From assembly GCF_902459465.1 (NCBI RefSeq), contig NC_047080.1, positions 3,844,001 to 3,908,000 of the forward strand: DNA of 64,000 bases, written 5' to 3'. Shown here piece by piece: positions 13,074-24,697 of this stretch. Position numbers and translations under genes: made by a program. The notes below the pieces were generated by a model. That model was not told where the DNA came from. It ran no database searches and worked only from the letters and a program-made list of their open reading frames with translations. Numbering within the stretch: position 1 is the first letter of the stretch; every line of letters begins with the position of its first letter. Origin of the DNA: Asterias rubens (taxonomy: Eukaryota).

Positions 13074-16000
13074 ATGTTATTAAAGGGGGCAACCTTGACG
13101 CTTTTGAGTCTTGTAGTATTTGCCGTAATCTCCAAGGCCACCGGCTCACCATGGAACGAAGAGCAGCGATGGGTCTCGGAGAAGCTCGACCCCGCCCGGT
13201 ACGACGTGGCAACGCGCCCGGTCAAGAATATCACAGATGTCGTCGAAGTCACCGTGGAAATGACCGTGTTTGGCATCAGTCTCGTAAGTTTCTTCGGGAA
13301 GTCATTCAAAAGACTTATTTTAAAGGCATTGTGCACTATTGGTAAATGCACAAAGCAATTGTTAGCATTAATAACTTTTAACAGAGAGCTGTTGAAAGTG
13401 TGTGAGGAGCGGCTCCCTCTGAAGTAACGTAGTTTTTGAGAAAGGGGTAGTTTCTCACTCAGCAAAATAAGAAAATACTTTAGATAATAAGCCTTTTATT
13501 ATGCATCTAACATATTCTTGGGTAGATTTCTCAAAGAGGAAAGACTGCTCATCTCGAGTTAGGACGAGTTACTCGTCCAAAACTTAGGACTAGCTTTATG
13601 TTTTTTAGGATCATCTTTCTGATATCGACCACAGTTTTAAAAGGCAACTTTATGAAATCGGGCCCAGAGTGCGCATTGCGATGTTCAATTTACATTAAAC
13701 GGAAACGATCTATCCCTGCCCATGTGATTGTATATTATTGTCTGTGTCTCTTCATTTATTGCAGGATTCGAGGAATCAAGAATTAAGTGCAAAGTCGGTG
13801 TCTAACATGGTAAGCCTCATTATACAAAAACAATCATCCTCTTAAAGACACTGGACACGTTTGGTAATTTTCAAAGACCGCTATTCTTAAAGACACTGGA
13901 CACGTTTAGTAATTTTCAAAGACCACTATTCTCACTTGGTGTATCCCCAAAGCAGCAAATCTGTGAAAGTTTTGACTCATTTGGAACTCCCATGTTTCAC
14001 ACATTTTTGTGTGTTCAGATGCCTTATAAAGGGCTTCCGGCCCGAAGTGTTTTAACAATTGGACGAAAAGTTAACTCTCTAAAAAAAAATACGTTTAAAA
14101 CTTTAGAGGGAGTCGTATCTCCCTGTACTACAAACAGCTCTCCATTGCTCGTTACCAGGTAAGTTGTATGCTAATAATTATTGCTTTTAGAAATTACCAA
14201 TAGTATACATTGCTTAGCCTTTGTAGGCAAATTAGTCACTATGACTACAAAGAAGGCTTCGTGTCTCAAGTTGTGTACGTAGTGCATTAAATTCAGTGGC
14301 GTAAATAAATATTGAAAAGTAGGGGACATTTCCTGTGTGCCGTTAAAAGCACTGGACACTATTTGTTCTTCATCAAAATAATTGTTAGCATAAAAGCTTA
14401 CTTGGTTACGAGTAATGGAGCTATTGAAAACACTGTAAGAAACGGTTCCCTCTGAAGTAACAGGGTTTTTGGAGAAAGAAGTAATTTCTCACTGAAATGT
14501 TTGAATTGGAATTCGAGGCATCTATCTGGAAGCACACAATTGTGCGACAAGGGTGTTCGTCCTTCCATTATTCTCTCACAGCTTCGACGACCAATTGAGT
14601 CCAACTTTTCACGATAAAAATGTTGAGATAGACCAAGTGCGAATAATGGGCTTTGACAATTACAAAAGAGTGCCTTTAATCGAGTGCCTTTAATCGAGTG
14701 CCTTTAATGTTTAACTTCATAACAGCACGCAGCGTGATGCTTCTTTCCTCCTTCAGTTCGGAAATGACCAGTGTAAAGTGGGAACGCTCGCCGAACACTC
14801 CTTGCTCAATAGTCTCCCGACGGGAGTTTTTCACGCAGAGCTGTCAAAGAAACAAACACAAAGTAAAAAGGCAAAGGTGTCCAGCGCCTTTAAAGCCATT
14901 TGACCCTTTCAGTAAATAGCATTGTCCAAAGGCCCACACTTCGTGTATCACAACTTACATATAACATAACAAACCTGTGAAAATTCAGGCTCAATCGGTC
15001 ATTAGAGTCGGGAGAAAATAACGGGAAAACCCACCCTTGTATCCGCACGTTTCGCCGTGTCATGACATGTTAAAAATAAATCCGTATCGAGAAATGATAT
15101 TGTTTTCTCAAAAAGTAAAGCATTTCATGGAATAATATTTCAAGAGAAGTCTTTCACCACTACCTCCTGTAAACCCTGTAAGTTATTAGTAAATCTGTGA
15201 ACTTTTTTTTCTGTACCGAAAGGGTCCAATGGCTTCAAGTATCTTTCTCAACAATTTACATGGTTTCTCGAGGTTCGTTGAAATTGTTTTCAAGTTCTAT
15301 ATATTTTATTTAGGGTTGGGAAGATAAACGGCTGAGCTGGAACACAAGCGAGTACGGTGGGATGGAGTCCATTGTCGTAAAAGCCAATAGGGTGTGGTAT
15401 CCAAACATCTTAATCCTGAACGCGTAAGTTTGGTTTTCTTTTAAAGACAGTGGACACTATTGGTAATTGTCAAAGACCAGTCATCTTACTTGGTGTATCT
15501 CAACATATGCATAAAATAACAAACCTGTGAAAGTTTGAGCTCAATTGGTCATCGAAGGTGCGAGATATGAATGAAATAAAAAACACCCTTGTCACACGAA
15601 GTTGTGTGCTTTCAGATGCTTGATTTCGAGGCCTAAAATTCTAAACTTGAGGTCTCGAAATCAAATTCGTCGAAAATTACTTCTTTCTCGAAAACTATGT
15701 CACTTGAGAGGGAGCCATTTCTCACAATGTTTTACACTATCAACGTCTCCCCATTACTCGGTACCAAGTGAGGTTTTATGCTGATAATTATTTTGAGTAG
15801 TTACCAGTAGTGTCCACTGCCTTTAAATTATTGGGGACTTTATTGATGAAGATGAGACTAACACCTTTTCAACAACAAAACTACTTTCTTAACTGGGACA
15901 ACAACTTACTAGCAATACTGCCACAATATATTGCCCACAAATGCCCACGGCTGTTCTCCTCGCTTGTTTTGCTTAGCAATTACATTTTCTGCTAAATACT

Positions 16001-17361
16001 GTCATGAAGTTGGGCTGATGATATGCCAAACGCGAAATTAGTGTTATTTATTTCTCATCAAATATGACATTTCAGACAGAAATATTTCGAGGGGATATTG
16101 TTTGTGCTCATCATTAGACCGTGTAAGTTTTAACGTAAATCTGTGACCTAGGATGAGTTTTGTTTCTATTACAAATTATTCTGTAATGTTCCCTTAGTAT
16201 CATATCAGAAGACTATATTGTGTGTAACTTTTTATTGCAGAATTAGTGGTAGCACATTAATCCCAAGTGATACGGAACTCCTGATTACGAATGAAGGTGC
16301 AATCTTTGTAAGTGTATCTCGTTACCTCAGCACGCAATGCTATCTCAATCAGGAATTATTCCCCTATGATACCCAAGTTTGTTGGATTTATCTCGGTATA
16401 AGAGGCACCCCAAGTGACGTCGTGTCTCTGACTGCATTGCAACACGGTCAGAACGAAGCGTTGATCGCAGAAACAACAAATTGGGAGCTAAAGAACGTCT
16501 CTCTCGTAGACACGTCCGCCCCCGCATGTATCGAGCACAGTGCCTCGGTGTCGTGCCGGCATGTCGCACTGGTATCAACATACATCTGCATTAAGCGCTT
16601 GGGAGGGTACTACGTGTACACGGCTATAATCCCCGTCAGTATTCTGACAGTGATGGCTTCGTTTGTCTTCTTGCTGCCCTCTGGATGTGGAGAGAAGCTC
16701 TCCTTCAGCGTTTCGGTCTTCTTTGGATTCGTCATCTTCCAGTTGGTTCTGCTTGATGGTCTGGCAGAGACGGGAGACGGCAAGCCATCTATTCTGGTAC
16801 GATACGTCATGTTTACCTTTGTATTGACTGGTATTGCTGTAATAGAGTCAGCAATCACCCTCATCCTACGCAATCAAAACGACAATCCCGAGGCGAGACT
16901 TCCAGTCAACAAAGTAGAGCCCTTGAAGAATGACAATGAGCCACAAGATGACAGCGAGGTAACTTTGCACGGGCTTCAAATAGCGGTAAGATTGCAATAC
17001 CCGTCTTTGACCACCATCTTTGATGTAAAACAATGGAAAAGTGCACGAGTGTACACTCTGCGCACAACTCTCAGCCAATGATAGCCTCACACGCCTCACA
17101 TCAAAGATGGCAGTCAATAACGTCATGTGCAGCTTATAATAGCTGACAATCCCCACAGCTTATTCTGCAAATTGACTAATATTGTTTTGAAGTTAATATG
17201 TTTTGTTGTCTTTACAGAAAAGTGTACCTCGTAATTGGGAGAAGATAGCTGTTTATGTCGACCGAATCTCATTTGTCCTCTTCTGGATTGTCTACATTAC
17301 TGTCTTGATCACACTTGTTGCTGAGTTACTTGATGATCCTGGGTGTCCCGAATACTTGTAG
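13074..17361 (+). CDS. Divergent nicotinic-acetylcholine-receptor-like Cys-loop ligand-gated cation channel subunit, paralog 1 (408 aa)
   Basis: Exons 13074-13283, 13765-13809, 15314-15423, 16241-16958, 17218-17361 (1227 nt, in frame). Signal peptide, RPV, WxDxRLxW, WxP, Cys-loop CYLNQELFPYDTQVC (C-x13-C), M1-M3, GEK before M2, M4 with VDR. The 45-nt and 110-nt exons are typical of nAChR genes. Confidence 0.92.
13845..14703. mobile_element. Two adjacent Kolobok-like family A MITEs with terminal micro-duplications
   Basis: The ~13845-14218 copy has a duplicated ~45-bp terminus. The ~14347-14703 copy ends in three copies of gagtgcctttaa. Confidence 0.7.
14894..15234. mobile_element. Kolobok-like TTAA MITE, family B
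   Basis: ttaa|agccatttgaccc...gggtccaatggct. Copies at 20662-21034, 25628-25993 and a partial copy at ~34830-34965. Confidence 0.78.
15445..15822. mobile_element. Kolobok-like TTAA MITE, family A
   Basis: TTAA on both sides (15441-15444, 15823-15826). TIR agacagtggacacta/tagtgtccactgcct. Inserted 21 nt downstream of the exon 3 donor of receptor paralog 1. Confidence 0.85.
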
Positions 17362-18289
17362 ACGTAACGCCCGCTTCAGGCAGGCGCGAATCCAGAGTCG
17401 CGCCGAACCAAATTCTGATTTCCCAGTACATGAAAAGTTCGACGTCTGAAACAGTTAGGGTGATCGACTGTTGCAGTTGTTCGGAACGACTCTGGGGCAC
17501 CTTGGTTTCAAACGTTGATCTTGTCATGAGCCGAGCCAATTTAAATGTGATGATAAGTTCGCCTGTCTGAAACCAAAATTGATAACAGCGCGAGTAAAAG
17601 CAGCCAATAAAATTATGTTTCAACATCCTATATACGATACTGTTGTAGATCTGCTGTAGATGTCTAGTAGTCACAATAAGCTACCGTTGTTACAGATATT
17701 GTTTGTTACTATAATATGCGTAATATATTAATTTTGTATTGTGTAATTATTTATTTTGTATCTTGGTAGGGTCTGAAACAATCATGATGACAGTTTGTTA
17801 ATTTTTGTCTTGACCCGTACACCTTTAAATGTATGTACTATAAGGAAGCTTCGCCACTCGCGTGCGTGGTCTCCTCTTCCAGTCGCTTGCGGATCGCGGC
17901 TCTCTCCAAGCCACGCAGGCCTTGGCAAACGGCTAGATGCGCCATAGCTCACCACCATCTTCATCATGTTCGGAGATTTAAAATAAAATAAAATTTAATT
18001 ATTACTGATGCATTGCGCTATTGCGCAGCCTATTTAAAGACAGTGGGCACTATTGGTAATTGACCAAGGCCAGTCTTCTCACTTGGTGTATCTCATCATG
18101 TGCATAAAATATCAAACCTGTGAAAATTTGAACTCAATTGGTCGTTGACGTTGTGAGATAATAATGAAAGAAAAAAACACCCTTGTCACACGAAATCGTG
18201 TGCATTTAGATGGTTGATTTCAAGACCTCAAATTCTAAACTTGAGGTCTCGAAATCAAATTCGTGGAAAATTACTTCTTTCTCACTGTC

Positions 18290-18511
18290 TTGCTTTATTC
18301 TACTGCCGTGGAGTAGATAATCGGAGGTTCGGGAGACTTCTCAGTTCTGAAAAGAACTGTCCTGCTTTTTAACTATTACCAGGGCGGATGGTATAGAAAT
18401 TAGACTGGACAACTACTTTAGCTTATAGGATCGTAATTAACTGTACTGCCGCGGAGTCAGTTCTGAAATTGGTCTCAACGTTTCGACTAGCTTGCTCTAG
18501 TCATCGTCAGG
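18290..18511 (-). mobile_element. Penelope-like retroelement fragment starting with a hammerhead-like core
   Basis: Minus strand begins ctgacga-t-gactag-agcaag-ctagtc-gaaacgtt, the typical PLE terminal motif. It abuts a truncated family A MITE (~18036-18290). Confidence 0.5.
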
Positions 18512-19244
18512 TAACATCATGTTCTTCTTATTATCGAATTAGAATGTGAGAACAATATCACACATGAAGACTAGTAAACTTTGTTTAAAGGCACATACAC
18601 GTTTGGTATAGTTGTAAAAGACTTAAGCATCAAATAACAAATCTGTGAAAATTTCTGCTCAACTGGTCATCGAATTTGCAAGAGAATAACGCAAGAAAAA
18701 ACACCCTTGTTGCATTAATTTATGTGCTTTCAGATGCATAATAAAAGGTTGGAAAAACTGTTGTTTAATTGAGACGAATTTTAATTAAAATCTCCAAGCT
18801 GGAATAAAAACAAAAATTCAAATCTTCAGGAGACAATTTTTTGGGGTGAGGTTTCTATCACCAAACATCGAACTTGTTTGTTTGTGAATTATAACAGAGG
18901 GCGCACCTGTATAAAAAATAATGCATTTCTACCACAGGCAGTTGGTTTTTGATTTTAATAACAATCCTTGCGAGAGAGTTGCTCAGTGTAAACACCATTA
19001 AATTGTTAATGTATGCGCCCCGAAGCAGGTCACCGAGCATGTACTGTGATGCATTGGATACTTCACCACAGTCGCCAGCAAACATCTTACCTAATAACAG
19101 CTTCAATACTAATTGTCTTCAGAGTGAGAAGGGGAATTATAATTCTACCTTGAGTCGGGCGACATAGAGGAGGCGATCAAAGGAGTATAGAGTGAGTGCA
19201 AGTTGTTTGATTTCTCTCTAAAAAAAATGTGTAACAGATGTTAA

Positions 19245-19616
19245 AGGAACACGTTGCCTTGGATCGGACGAGTTGGTCTATAACAAATGTTTTGTAACCA
19301 TTAATTGTTATAAAATGCATATGGTTGGAAAGATGTTTTAAAAGTAGAACACAATATTATTTGCCTCGAAATTGCGTGGTTTTCCTTTAACTTTGCGAAC
19401 AAACACGGTCGGCCATTTGTGGGAGTCAAAAATTTGACTCCCACGAATGGCCGACCGTGTTTGTCGACGAGGTAAGAGGAAAACCACGCAATTTCGAGTG
19501 ATACTTGTGTGGATCATTATATTATACTTTTAAAATATCTTTCTAATCATATTATAACAAACGGTTACAAATGCTTTTCAAAGACCAACTCGACCGATCC
19601 AAGGCAACGTGTTCCT
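19245..19616. mobile_element. Fold-back TTAA MITE (almost entirely palindromic)
   Basis: ttaa|aggaacacgttgccttggatcgg ... ccgatccaaggcaacgtgttcct|ttaa. Arms extend to a central ggccatttgtgggagtcaaa/tttgactcccacgaatggcc hairpin. Confidence 0.88.
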
Positions 19617-19816
19617 TTAAATTTCCATAGCGATAAAGAATATTGATTTCACTGATGTGTACTCCGTTCTTTCCCGAGTTCCTTAAAAACAAATCACATG
19701 CATTTTATTACTCGGGCGGGATTCGAACCCACGACCTTTGCAACCCTAGAGCAGTGTCATAGGCCCTACCAACTGACAAGACAATTAGTGTACTTGTCAA
19801 AACAAAATTCATTTAA

Positions 19817-20176
19817 AGACACTGGACACTATTGGTAATTGTCAAAGACCAGTCTTCTCACTTGGTGTATCTCATTATAATATGCATAAAATAACAAACC
19901 TGAGAAAATTATGAGCTCGATCGTCGGAGTTGCGAGATAACTATGAACGAAAAAAAGCACCCTTGTCACACGAAGTTGTGTGTTTTCAAGTGCTTGATTT
20001 GGAGGCCTCAAATTCTAAATTCGTGGAAAATTACTTCTTTCTCGAAAACTATGTCACTTCAGTGGGAGCCGTTTCTCACAATGTTTTATACTATCAACCT
20101 CTCCCCAATACTCATTACCAAGTAAGGTTTTATGCTGATAGATATTTTGAGTAATTACCAATAGTGTCCACTGCCT
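19817..20176. mobile_element. Kolobok-like TTAA MITE, family A
   Basis: Same TIRs and body as 15445-15822. Confidence 0.82.
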
Positions 20177-20661
20177 AAACGCTTCACGAACAATAATTGT
20201 TTAGACAAAGCTGTAAAATAAACGTGAATCTGTTGAGGTCTCTTGAAGTTCGACTGACTACCAGCAAAAACAAATAATAAACGTTGTTCATTATGTATGC
20301 ATGACTACACCTGTTTCATAGTTACACACTGAAGTTTATGGGGAGTGATATTATGTCAAAGTAAAACAAATTTCACAGTTTCATATTTGACTGCGTATCC
20401 GTATAGCTGGTTATTGCGTTTTTGCTAGCATCTTATTCTGTTGTATAGATGTTGGTGAAGAGGTAATGTCTCACAAGAATACTTGGAAAGGACTGTAAGC
20501 CTGAGCCATGTTTCAGGCTTCTGAAAGCACTAAAATTTGTAGTGTATTTGCCGTGTTTTCAGGTTATTGCACAACATGATAATCAAATGTAGCACTTTCA
20601 AGACTAACTAGTAAAACGTATATATATGTATAATACTAATGTATTATTAGTCAGTCATTAA

Positions 20662-21034
20662 AGCTATAGTGGTCACTTTCGGTAAACGGCATTGTCCATG
20701 GCCCACACTTCGCGTGTCACAACTATTATATAAAATAACAAACCTGTGAAAATTTAGGCTCAATCGGTCATCGGAGTCGGGAGAAAATAACGGAAAAACC
20801 CACCCTTGTTTCTGCACGTTTCGCCGTGTCATGACATGTGTTTAAAATAAATCCGTAATTCGCTATATCGAGAATTGATATTGTTGTAATATAATGTTTT
20901 CTCAAAAAGTAAAGCATTTCATGAAATAATATTTCAACAGAAGTCTTTCACCATTACCTTCTGTGAACCCTGTAAGTTATTTGTAAATCTGTGAACTTTT
21001 AATGTGTTTTCTGTTTCGAAAGTGTCTAATGGCT
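20662..21034. mobile_element. Kolobok-like TTAA MITE, family B
   Basis: TTAA flanks; body matches 14894-15234 and 25628-25993. Confidence 0.8.
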
Positions 21035-21641
21035 TTAAAGTACTATATTATTTTAATGCCCTCTTTGCAATCATTCGTATCCACAAGTATGGACTGGCTT
21101 TAGACTTCTTAGAATATAAAGAGAGTGAAACGTTTCGCCCATGAGATTTTGAGAAAGAACAAATGAAAGCTATTAAATTATTAATGGAAGCGTGCTGTTT
21201 TCGACTCCCGTTTATACAAATGCCTCAAGATCAGAGTTGACATAATACGTGATATATCATTGTACGCGTTTATTAAATCAATTAGTATTTTGGGGTCAAG
21301 GACGAATTAACTCCTTCCATTACTCGTATCCGGGCTGCTTTTTGGTCAAGCAGAGAGTTCATGTTGATGTGAATTGATGGGGCCTTTTAGAGCTGCTGCT
21401 GTTCGTTCATTGATTGAAAAGCAAAGGTAGATTAGAGTCGCCATTAATAACATAAAGTCACATGATGAAAGATCACTCAGCCTTGACAGTGAGAGCAGTG
21501 ATGAGTCTATTACATGGTGTTACCGCAAACTCTTCTATAGCCTTGACACAGTGAGAGTAGAGAATAGTATTTAACGAAACAGTTTCAGAACTCTATATAA
21601 TAATTTCAACAGCTAAAAATTCACTCTCAAATTGTTTCAGA

Positions 21642-24600
21642 ATGATAATGAGAGCAATCTTGACGCTTTTGAGTCTTGGAGTATTTGCCGTAATCTCCAA
21701 GGCCACCGGCTCACCATGGAACGAAGAGCAGCGATGGGTCTCGGAGAAGCTCGACCCCGCCCGGTACGATGTGGCAACGCGCCCGGTCAAGAATATCGCA
21801 GATGCCGTCAATGTGACAGTGGAAATGGTTCTGGTTAAAATCGTCGGACTCGTAAGTTTCTTACACGACTCGGAAAGGGCGGGAGACCTTTTCAGTTCTG
21901 ATCCTATAGTCTTTGGTGATTCTGTCTTCGCTAAGTTGATGAACACCACGATTGTGTGGGAACTTTTTCTTTCTTCCATTAATTGGTGCACCGTGTGTCT
22001 ATTGCAAACTGTGTAAGATTTGAATTAACAATATTATGTAGTTTCATGTTAGACACCGCAACCCCGTACATGTAAATTAATTGATGTCATTGTCTCTGTA
22101 TCTTTTGCAGGATTCAAAGACTCAACTATTAACAGCCGTAACTTCATCTAACATGGTATGCCACTTTATTTATCCTCGTATAAAATATGTTAAAACTATA
22201 CTTTCAGCATCAAGTTTGATATGTTTGATTATTTTTTTAAAGGGTTGGGAAGATAAACGTCTTAGCTGGAACACAAGCGAGTACAGTGGGATGGAGTCCA
22301 TTGTCGTTCAAGCCAATATGGTGTGGTATCCAAACGTCTTAATACTGAATGCGTAAGTTATTTTTCATTTATTTTTTTAAGCAAGGGCCCAATTCGCCTG
22401 AACATGTGACGGCACTTGAGCAAGTTCGAGTGTGCACAATGGTTAAATACAGGTTGACCATTTTGACTCGAACACAGGCTCACCTGGTAGACCATTTGGA
22501 ACCAGCCTCGAGCCCATGGTTTCTTCACTGGTCCCAACATCATGTTCCATTCTAACATGTGTTAAGCGCAGAGGGGAACCAGTGACACTTTGGCGAAAAG
22601 GTTGAAGGTTGACTAGACTAGCAAACGAGTCGTTCGGGTGAGTACGTCACTGCGCATGTGGTCTGTGGTCGACCACTGGTGGACTAAATGTGCGCACTCG
22701 AACTTGCTCTTTATGCCTCGTGAATTACGCCAGAGAGTGTCCTCTAGCCTAGGTCAATACCCGCCCATCTTCACCTCCACCTACATTCATGTGCAGACGA
22801 CCGAGAGTGCAGGTGCCAAATGTCACCTCGGACCAAACTACCTCCATAGACCAATCAAGACACTATGGGTGCGTTCGTTTAGCTTCCCTGTGTCTACCCC
22901 GCGGTGCTCACTCGGGTGAGCCCCTGACAAGAGCTAAACAAACGACCACTCACAGCTCTCGCAGAGTGACGTCGTTTTACCTGGGACCAGCCCCCAAGTG
23001 ACCCACTCCACAAACAGGGCACTTGGGGCTGACCTGGGTGAGCCCCTGGGATGACGTCAAAAGCTATTCGAACGCACCGGGGCAGACCGGGGATGACCCA
23101 GGGAAGCTAAACGAACGCACCCAAAATGGAAACCTTATTACGTCACTGCATGGTTATCCAATGAAATCACTGTATCTAGTAAAATCACTGGTTCTGAAAG
23201 CAAGTACCTGTCTTTACCCCTGCGGATGAATACAGTGGACCAGTTTATGGCCCAATAGGGGACTTTGAAACGCCAGGAGGCAACAGACTTACCAAGTAAT
23301 CTGAGCAAGCGCACAGGAACAATAGGTTACCCTGATAAGACTGCTGCCACCTAGCGTCCAAAAAGTCCCCCATTTCATGAAACTGTTACTACTACCAAGG
23401 ATAAAATCGCTTATGACGGGAAACAAAATAAAGGTGGGCTTTGCATCCGTCACTGATGTTTATATATAAACGATTTTATAAAGATGCATGTGTTTGTCTA
23501 TAACTCTTTCAGAATCGATGAGAACACATTAATCCCAAGCGATACGGAGGTTCTGGTAACGAGTGAAGGTGAACTGTTTGTAAGGGCCCAACGTACCCAT
23601 GACACGCAATGCTTTCTCAAGCAGGAGCTATTCCCGTTTGATACCCAAGATTGTTTGCTTGTCCTCGGTACGAGAGGCGCCCCCAGTGACGTCATCGCTC
23701 TAACTGCGTCACAATATGTTCAGAGCCCAAAGAACATCGGCTCGAACGCGAACTGGGAGCTGGAGAGTGTCTTACCCGTGGAAGGGTACTCTGTCGAGTG
23801 CATCAAACACCGCAGTGCATTAGATGGTGAGGTTCAGTGTCAACGGAGCTCCCAGATTGTGTTAGCTCTTTGCTTGCACCGGGTGCCGAAGTACTACATG
23901 TACACGATCATGGCACCCACCGCAATCCTGACAATGTTGGCATCAATTGTCTTCTGGCTGCCCCCGGAATGTGGCGAGAAGCTCTCGTTCGGCGTCTCGG
24001 TCTTCTTCGGATTCGTCATCTTCCAGTTGGTCCTGGAGAATGATTTGGCCGATGCGGGAAACGGCAAACCATCTATTCTGGTACGATACGAGTTGTGTAA
24101 CTTTACGCTGACGGGTGTTGCTTTATTGGTGTCGGCATTCACCCTCATCCTGCGTAATAAAACCGACGATCACGATGCGGCGAAAGACCGACACGTCACA
24201 TCAGAGGAGACTTTACAAAGGAATGGCGACGTGCCCAGGTCGCAGGATGACGAGGTAACTCGTTATACGTTACAGTCAGCGGTGAGTCATATTTCCACTC
24301 ATTATATAACAATTCTCATGTTTGATAATTAGAGTTAATACTAGTATTACGAGTTACTCGTCCTAACTATGGATCAGCCTTAAAGATGTTAATATCTCCC
24401 AGGACTAGTCATAACTCTTTGTAAAATCGACCGGCCCCAGGTTGTGTTCCTTTTCACTCCCTATACAGCTTTATTCTGCAATATTGTAAAAAAAAATTCT
24501 ACAGCTTATTCTGCATATTATGGTTCACTTGTTAAGGATATGTTTCTTTGTCTTTACAGAAAAGGGTACATCGTAATTGGAAGCAGACAGCTGTTTATGT

Positions 24601-24697
24601 CGACCGAATCTCATTTGTCCTGTTTTGGATTGCATACGCCTTTTTCTTGATCCCACTGATTGTTGAGGTAGCTTATTACTCCAGGAAGTGTGAATAG
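21642..24697 (+). CDS. Divergent nicotinic-acetylcholine-receptor-like Cys-loop ligand-gated cation channel subunit, paralog 2 (414 aa)
   Basis: Exons 21642-21851, 22111-22155, 22243-22352, 23513-24254, 24560-24697 (1245 nt, in frame). Same exon structure as paralog 1. Cys-loop CFLKQELFPFDTQDC, CGEKLSFGVSVFFGF M2, M4 WKQTAVYVDRISF. Confidence 0.92.
22867..23122. mobile_element. PIF/Harbinger-like MITE
   Basis: Same TIRs as 9148-9374. Confidence 0.78.

Follow-up and report, generated by a model that had tools for sequence, protein, structure and literature searches.

A stretch of 64,000 nucleotides of the starfish Asterias rubens (C20:3,844,001-3,908,000; hereafter the window, with positions counted from its first letter) contains two genes, A and B, on the + strand within positions 13074-24697. 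[quoted passage not shown] Among the sampled sequences, they belong to a starfish-specific subclade within a clade restricted to ambulacrarians. As aligned with canonical subunits, neither product appears to supply any residue of the aromatic box that binds acetylcholine (ACh), on the principal or on the complementary face. The role tentatively preferred for A and B is that of accessory subunits in heteromeric cation channels, comparable to beta1 of the muscle receptor, and it is considered only slightly likelier than gating by a ligand other than ACh.

Gene structure and ligand-pocket residues

Genes A and B have an identical layout of five coding exons, which extends from the ATG of gene A at 13074 to the end of the gene B stop codon at 24697. 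All introns are of the GT..AG type, no internal stops were found, and the products are 417 aa for gene A and 423 aa for gene B. The second and third exons, of 45 and 110 bp, have the sizes usual in nicotinic receptor genes. In the large exon of each gene, both Pfam domains of the family, Neur_chan_LBD (PF02931) and Neur_chan_memb (PF02932), scored above the gathering cut-off. The coding features are as follows:

13074..13283, + strand: gene A exon 1, with ATG, signal peptide, N-terminal helix and strand beta1 (gene model)
13765..13809, + strand: gene A exon 2, 45 bp, with strand beta2 and loop D, Val at the Trp position (gene model, alignment)
15314..15423, + strand: gene A exon 3, 110 bp, with loop A WYPNILILN at 15395-15421 (gene model, alignment)
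16241..16985, + strand: gene A exon 4, holding the Cys-loop to M3 and most of the short intracellular loop (gene model, Pfam, RNA contigs)
16338-16382, + strand: Cys-loop of gene A, in exon 4
16392-16418, + strand: loop B LGIRGT of gene A, in exon 4
16527-16556, + strand: loop C Cys pair of gene A, in exon 4
16608-16682, + strand: M1 of gene A, in exon 4
16689-16760, + strand: M2 of gene A, with GEK and 9' Phe, in exon 4
16791-16877, + strand: M3 of gene A, in exon 4
17218..17361, + strand: gene A exon 5, with pre-M4, M4 and stop codon (gene model)
21641..21851, + strand: first coding exon of gene B, with ATG at 21642 (gene model, RNA contig)
22111..22155, + strand: 45-bp exon of gene B, with loop D, Ser at the Trp position (gene model, alignment)
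22243..22352, + strand: 110-bp exon of gene B, with loop A WYPNVLILN at 22324-22350 (gene model, alignment)
23513..24281, + strand: large exon of gene B (gene model, Pfam)
23610-23654, + strand: Cys-loop of gene B, in the large exon
23664-23690, + strand: loop B LGTRGA of gene B, in the large exon
23799-23840, + strand: loop C Cys pair of gene B, in the large exon
23892-23966, + strand: M1 of gene B, in the large exon
23973-24044, + strand: M2 of gene B, in the large exon
24075-24161, + strand: M3 of gene B, in the large exon
24560..24697, + strand: last exon of gene B, with pre-M4, M4 and stop codon (gene model)

The pocket residues were compared in an alignment that included human alpha3, alpha-type subunits of starfish and urchin, and beta1 of shark and turtle. 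In loop A, Tyr is replaced by Leu in both products (WYPNILILN and WYPNVLILN), and Asp by Asn. The Trp of loop B is Arg in both (LGIRGT in A, LGTRGA in B), while the Trp of loop D is Val in A and Ser in B. The loop D position is also variable in relatives, with Leu in the A. amurensis orthologue of B, Ala in the Acanthaster homologue of the pair and Ser in a third Asterias paralogue. Neither YxCC nor vicinal cysteines in loop C were found in A or B in this alignment. All the marks of an alpha-type principal face (YxCC, loop B Trp and loop A Tyr) are thus missing, as is the loop D Trp that marks a complementary non-alpha face. These replacements had been reported in an earlier sequence-only reading of the stretch, and the alignment with canonical subunits agrees with it.

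The Cys-loop is kept as C-x13-C with the FPxD motif (C..LFPYDTQVC in A, C..LFPFDTQDC in B), and its two cysteines are invariant across 62 aligned sequences. Both products also retain the GEK motif with Glu at -1', the Arg preceding M1, the Pro of the M2-M3 loop, and all of M1-M4. The -1' Glu of M2 is an established predictor of cation selectivity. GEK is found in A, B and their orthologues and GER in Acanthaster, and the Pro-Ala-Arg motif of anion-type channels is absent. The sequence-only reading had described the Cys-loop, the GEK motif and four transmembrane helices as intact in uninterrupted open reading frames, and gene models, Pfam and motifs are in accord. It had also given the M3-M4 loop as about 36 aa; the loop is indeed short and the length roughly right, the intracellular stretch from LILRN to AVYVDR being 47 aa in A and 51 aa in B.

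The AlphaFold model of B shows a beta-sandwich followed by four helices, with a predicted local distance difference test score (pLDDT) of 90 and a predicted template modelling score (pTM) of 0.79. Each subunit probably folds like a nicotinic subunit with its gating parts kept. By its residues, each would be able to enter a pentamer, yet unable to form a classical ACh site with any neighbour.

Three points had no place in the earlier reading: a spaced Cys pair in loop C, Phe at position 9' of M2, and equal residue losses in vertebrate beta1. The Cys pair flanks a lengthened loop C in every member of the lineage seen, spaced as C-x8-C in A (C218 and C227), C-x12-C in B (C218 and C231), C-x11-C in Acanthaster, C-x9-C or C-x10-C in Patiria and C-x29-C in the third paralogue. 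Both cysteines, together with the Cys-loop and the pre-M1 Arg, are invariant in a four-sequence alignment of the lineage. In the AlphaFold model they lie on both strands of the hairpin formed by loop C, where they may form a disulfide. In this the pair is reminiscent of glycine and GluCl receptors, which have a disulfide in loop C. With this new pair, the starfish pocket appears to have been rebuilt, more than merely eroded.

In M2, the usual pore-gate Leu at 9' is Phe in A, B, Acanthaster and Patiria, and 8' is also Phe in A and B. Among 312 segments of the nicotinic-type proteins fetched, 9' was Leu in 253 and Phe in 10, and six of these ten came from the A/B lineage.

Phylogenetic position and copy number

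An exhaustive HMMER search of 1.84 billion representatives returned 7037 relatives. Close matches were restricted to the third Asterias paralogue and, at 41% identity, a protein from Acanthaster, all others having 32% identity or less. In an IQ-TREE analysis of 81 rows and 456 columns under LG+C20, in which cephalopod chemotactile receptor (CR) sequences were not among the rows, A and B fell in an 18-row clade of echinoderm and hemichordate sequences only, with support of 99/96. Nested in it is a 16-row echinoderm clade (99/99), which in turn contains the starfish subclade (100/100). A profile search added two members from Patiria miniata, and the subclade then covers Asterias, Acanthaster and Patiria.

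The independent, uncharacterised lineage that had been proposed from the letters alone is therefore recovered, as a starfish subclade of the 99/96 clade. Since that clade is ambulacrarian-only among sampled members, the A/B lineage is independent of the cephalopod receptors. No paper treating this echinoderm lineage was found, and none giving accession numbers of the Acanthaster or Asterias homologues. A paper on the lophotrochozoan expansion of nicotinic acetylcholine receptors (nAChRs) does not treat echinoderms (PMC6896357), and a review of alpha9/alpha10 mentions them only for Cys-less channels (PMC8634148).

In a tree of 16 rows, the split between A and B predates the divergence of A. rubens and A. 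amurensis, and the same tandem pair is present in A. amurensis. The two Patiria genes are mutual sisters and adjoin Acanthaster. The Acanthaster locus holds a single gene within 10 kb on either side, and in a synteny check the NAP and MFS genes flanking it had no match in the window. Asterias has 2+1 genes; two were found in Patiria and one in Acanthaster. The genome-wide count of paralogues that had been suggested gave four A. rubens genes in the echinoderm clade, with no large array. Apart from A and B, these are the paralogue at C20:10.39 Mb and a gene at C6:9.53 Mb:

G000:C20:10393971-10399163 (L004): third A. rubens paralogue, annotated with 325 aa (P0022) versus 430 aa in A. amurensis (P0153)
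G000:C6:9534603-9538004 (L011, L033): fourth A. rubens gene of the clade, without the loop B Trp

The third paralogue has Leu at 9', and the stretch of loop C that separates its cysteines is much longer. Most other surveyed nicotinic-type exons of A. rubens keep the loop B Trp (as SW; GSW in seven) and about two-thirds keep YxCC, so candidate alpha partners exist in this species. Other tandem clusters of nicotinic-type genes were noted at C5:21.22-21.29 Mb, C1:4.54-4.61 Mb and C11:18.45-18.50 Mb. They keep the loop B Trp, have YxCC and the M2 motif NLL..LFQQLI in many members, and represent an expansion separate from A/B.

Comparison with muscle beta1 and sister lineages

In a PDB sequence search, nAChR chains led the 60 best matches, with 5-HT3A appearing from E 1e-26. 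The top match was muscle beta1, at E 1e-38 versus 1e-31 for the next families. With Foldseek, all of the top 50 matches were nAChR chains and beta1 again came first. This subunit of the muscle receptor forms no agonist site and is part of an ACh-gated receptor. Like A and B, beta1 lacks the CC pair, contains GEK and has lost the box residues of loops A, B and D: its loop A Tyr is Leu or Met, its loop B Trp is Tyr and its loop D Trp is Phe or Tyr. Unlike them, it retains Asp in loop A, the PPA motif in loop E and Leu at 9', its intracellular loop is long, and it has no spaced loop C Cys pair. Since vertebrate beta1 shows an equal pattern, loss of the aromatic box alone does not identify a non-cholinergic receptor. 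The label "non-cholinergic" given by the sequence-only reading is thus not established, the same four losses being found in a subunit of an ACh-gated receptor.

True orthology of A/B with vertebrate muscle beta1, or with a BGDE-type subunit, is highly improbable. The best PDB sequence and structural matches, the same residue pattern and the NCBI name "beta-like" would be in line with it, but in a quick tree shark and turtle beta1 lie in the canonical heteromeric clade (18 rows, support 100), well away from the ambulacrarian clade, and in the 81-row analysis they likewise sit with the canonical heteromeric subunits. A tree constrained to join the starfish subclade to beta1 was 75 log-likelihood units worse and was rejected by the approximately unbiased (AU) test (p 0.0003). 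Grouping with a conserved beta-type subunit, an outcome that the sequence-only reading had set against its own proposal, did not hold for beta1.

The sister echinoderm lineages in the 99/96 clade (Acanthaster P0038, Lytechinus P0046, Apostichopus P0033, Amphiura P0071 and the A. rubens C6 gene) share with A/B the absence of the loop A Tyr, the loop B Trp and YxCC. They differ from A/B in that the loop D Trp is kept and no loop C Cys pair is present, and they are longer, at 438-475 aa. Since the loop D Trp is kept and the principal-face residues are gone, these lineages look like complementary non-alpha subunits. This pattern suggests that the A/B lineage may descend from ordinary non-alpha partners of alpha subunits. 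In the simplest history, such a partner would have lost the loop D Trp in starfish, and would then have gained the loop C Cys pair and 9' Phe and shortened its intracellular loop.

A possible accessory role

As accessory subunits, A and B would fill a non-binding place in heteromeric cation channels, with the agonist sites provided by other subunits, as for muscle beta1. They would tune assembly, gating, through the 9' Phe in the pore gate, and location, through the very short intracellular loop. Such a role would require only the loss of the loop D Trp in the starfish lineage, because the echinoderm relatives still resemble complementary-face partners. It is favoured on account of the non-alpha ancestry and the small, stable copy number. 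By analogy, the position of beta1 as best sequence and structural match and its equal residue losses would also back it. The non-binding half of the definition of an accessory subunit is what the residues of A and B suggest.

The rate of evolution was evaluated by comparing A. rubens with A. amurensis for nonsynonymous (dN) and synonymous (dS) divergence and their ratio, omega. One exon of a canonical alpha-type subunit was used as control; between the two Asterias species its identity is 99%, with urchin orthologues 78% and with human alpha3 51%.

Gene A: dN 0.033, dS 0.077, omega 0.42
Gene B: dN 0.042, dS 0.076, omega 0.56
Canonical alpha-type control exon: dN 0.0026, dS 0.0315, omega 0.08

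Several observations weigh against an accessory role. Constraint on A/B is five to seven times below that on the canonical subunit, with dN 12-16 times higher, and the identity of 41-43% between starfish orders also indicates that constraint is weak. The divergence between A and B peaks in the extracellular part with loops E, B, F and C, where dN is 0.375 versus 0.13 in exons 2-3. From the topology of the 16-row tree, tandem duplication was independent in the Asterias and Patiria lineages. In addition, a new Cys pair around an enlarged loop C, kept in every member, would be unexpected for an idle principal face.

The 5' exon behaves differently from the rest of the pair. In exon 1, A and B (13081-13294 and 21646-21862) have 88% DNA identity and a dS of 0.14, versus 0.5-0.8 elsewhere. 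The same low divergence between the copies is found in A. amurensis, and it looks like the result of gene conversion.

Gating by another ligand or relaxed constraint

It is possible, with slightly less confidence than the accessory role, that A and/or B form a homomeric or A/B channel gated by a ligand other than ACh. The remodelled pocket, without an aromatic cage and with a long loop C stapled by a disulfide, would receive a peptide, protons, a metal, or a compound of hydrophobic or steroid-like character. Losses on both faces are of the kind reported for cephalopod CRs, and orphan nicotinic-like receptors are known (PMC10338036). The fast evolution and lineage-specific tandem duplicates are also consistent with such a receptor, as are the greatest divergence between A and B in the ligand-binding half, the loop C Cys pair conserved in Asterias, Acanthaster, Patiria and the third paralogue, and the retention of the gating and pore parts. 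However, inside the starfish subclade the loop B Trp position holds Arg, Val, Ala or Thr, which gives no sign of a common new ligand chemistry. Each species has just 1-3 genes, and the nearest relatives resemble ordinary non-alpha subunits. Moreover, no nicotinic-type gene was among the 11 differentially expressed receptors of crown-of-thorns sensory tentacles, a weak negative (PMC6267866).

Cephalopod CRs are nicotinic-like products of lineage-specific tandem duplication in which the ACh signature residues are missing (PMC10338036). A and B resemble them in the loss of ACh residues and in being tandem duplicates. They differ in that all sampled relatives are echinoderm or hemichordate, and in being a tiny family compared with the large CR array. 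A and B were not placed in a cephalopod-specific CR clade; the clade that supports them is echinoderm/hemichordate only, in a tree from which CRs are absent. CR chains were absent both from the 60 best PDB sequence matches and from the 50 best structural matches, and nothing is concluded from the structural result.

As a special case, a starfish-specific receptor of this kind could sense an environmental cue (prey, conspecific or saponin-like) in the tube feet or epidermis, which is considered quite unlikely. The high rate of evolution and the lineage-specific tandem duplication are consistent with an environment-facing receptor and are no proof of one. The sequence-only reading had described the channels as possibly contact-chemosensory; the tiny family, far from the cephalopod arrays, and the weak negative from the sensory tentacles leave this description unsupported.

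Another comparison is offered by Alpo4 of Alvinella pompejana (PDB 8bx5), an orphan nicotinic-like receptor with no vicinal Cys pair and no response to ACh or serotonin, whose aromatic cage is intact (F103, W159, Y199, Y205 and W65) (PMC10338036). Alpo4 is among the top PDB matches (E 1e-31) and, like A/B, is an invertebrate nicotinic-like subunit without the vicinal pair; unlike A/B, it retains the aromatic cage. It illustrates that nicotinic-like orphans can resist deorphanisation despite an intact aromatic cage.

Finally, A and B may be under relaxed constraint, either as drifting expressed remnants or only as weak dominant-negative or modulatory partners. This is unlikely, although omega is about 0.5 with high dN, the pocket positions are variable, and the k-mer depth of the A/B RNA contigs is low (6-32, depth being a poor measure). 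Both genes are intact in two Asterias species and the homologues are intact in Acanthaster and Patiria, across a long divergence. Purifying selection was detectable for A and B jointly (omega < 1, p 0.0006). The Cys-loop, the loop C Cys pair, the pre-M1 Arg and GEK are invariant, splicing is correct, and exon 1 has apparently been homogenised between the copies.

Transcription and splicing

Genes A and B are transcribed and correctly spliced. RNA contigs from four public runs (four studies) were mapped on 16200-22199, and both genes were present in the same RNA samples. The start of gene A exon 4 at 16241 coincides with the start of contigs in runs X1, X8 and X13, and at its end contigs stop at 16984 in X1 and X8. 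A contig of 1039 nt in X8 spans this exon with 264 nt before it and 31 nt beyond. The last 88 of the 264 leading nt match the near-identical exon 1 of gene B with 7 mismatches, and the contig is read as a probable spliced exon 1-5 transcript of gene A. In X13, a contig (16697-17036) extends 51 nt beyond the exon 4 donor into the intron, which reflects either unspliced RNA or DNA in that run. Two untranslated features were located between the coding regions:

17427..18062, + strand: probable 3' untranslated region of gene A (X1 and X8 contigs, unjoined to exon 5 in the listed pieces)
18660..19191, + strand: non-coding 5' exon of gene B (X1 contig; X8 and X13 contigs end at 19191)

An X1 contig in which 18660-19191 is spliced to 21641-21769 shows that the coding part of gene B is preceded by a non-coding 5' exon and a GT..AG intron (19192-21640). 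The intron ends one base before the ATG, so that the non-coding exon is 2.4 kb upstream. This exon starts about 1.3 kb past the gene A stop codon, downstream of the probable 3' untranslated region of A. Because it is so near the end of gene A, read-through or common regulation of the two genes is possible.

Annotation and intergenic repeats

The gene B product is identical to the NCBI protein P0003, named "acetylcholine receptor subunit beta-like [Asterias rubens]". The gene A model corresponds exon for exon to P0002, its annotated orthologue in A. amurensis. Protein searches yielded no complete A. rubens product of gene A; what they gave of it was the open reading frame fragment P0001, from an ENA contig of another individual, with 2 aa differences in exon 4. 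An exact look-up of the two A. rubens proteins gave one ENA contig for P0001 and no record for P0003. Gene A may be absent or mis-modelled in the public annotation.

Very high-copy repeats were observed between A and B at 18000-18800, 19200-20200, 20600-21000 and 21400-21600, with summed RNA-run contig depths between 10^4 and 10^6 in all runs mapped. A related copy with 82% identity is found in gene A intron 2 (14890-15238). The repeats between the genes are probably transposable elements.

Significance

Nicotinic-type subunits without an ACh site are common in invertebrate genomes, and few have a known role. The A/B lineage is small, tractable and starfish-only, with 1-3 genes per species that are intact and expressed and have orthologues in four species. 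It is a manageable case for distinguishing a silent partner, the route taken by beta1, from a receptor for a new ligand, the route taken by the cephalopod receptors. If A and B are accessory subunits, the beta1 route would have been taken twice in deuterostomes. If they respond to a new ligand, no non-cholinergic receptor of nicotinic type would have been described in an echinoderm before them, and if that ligand is an environmental cue, deuterostomes would have arrived independently at a counterpart of the cephalopod CRs.

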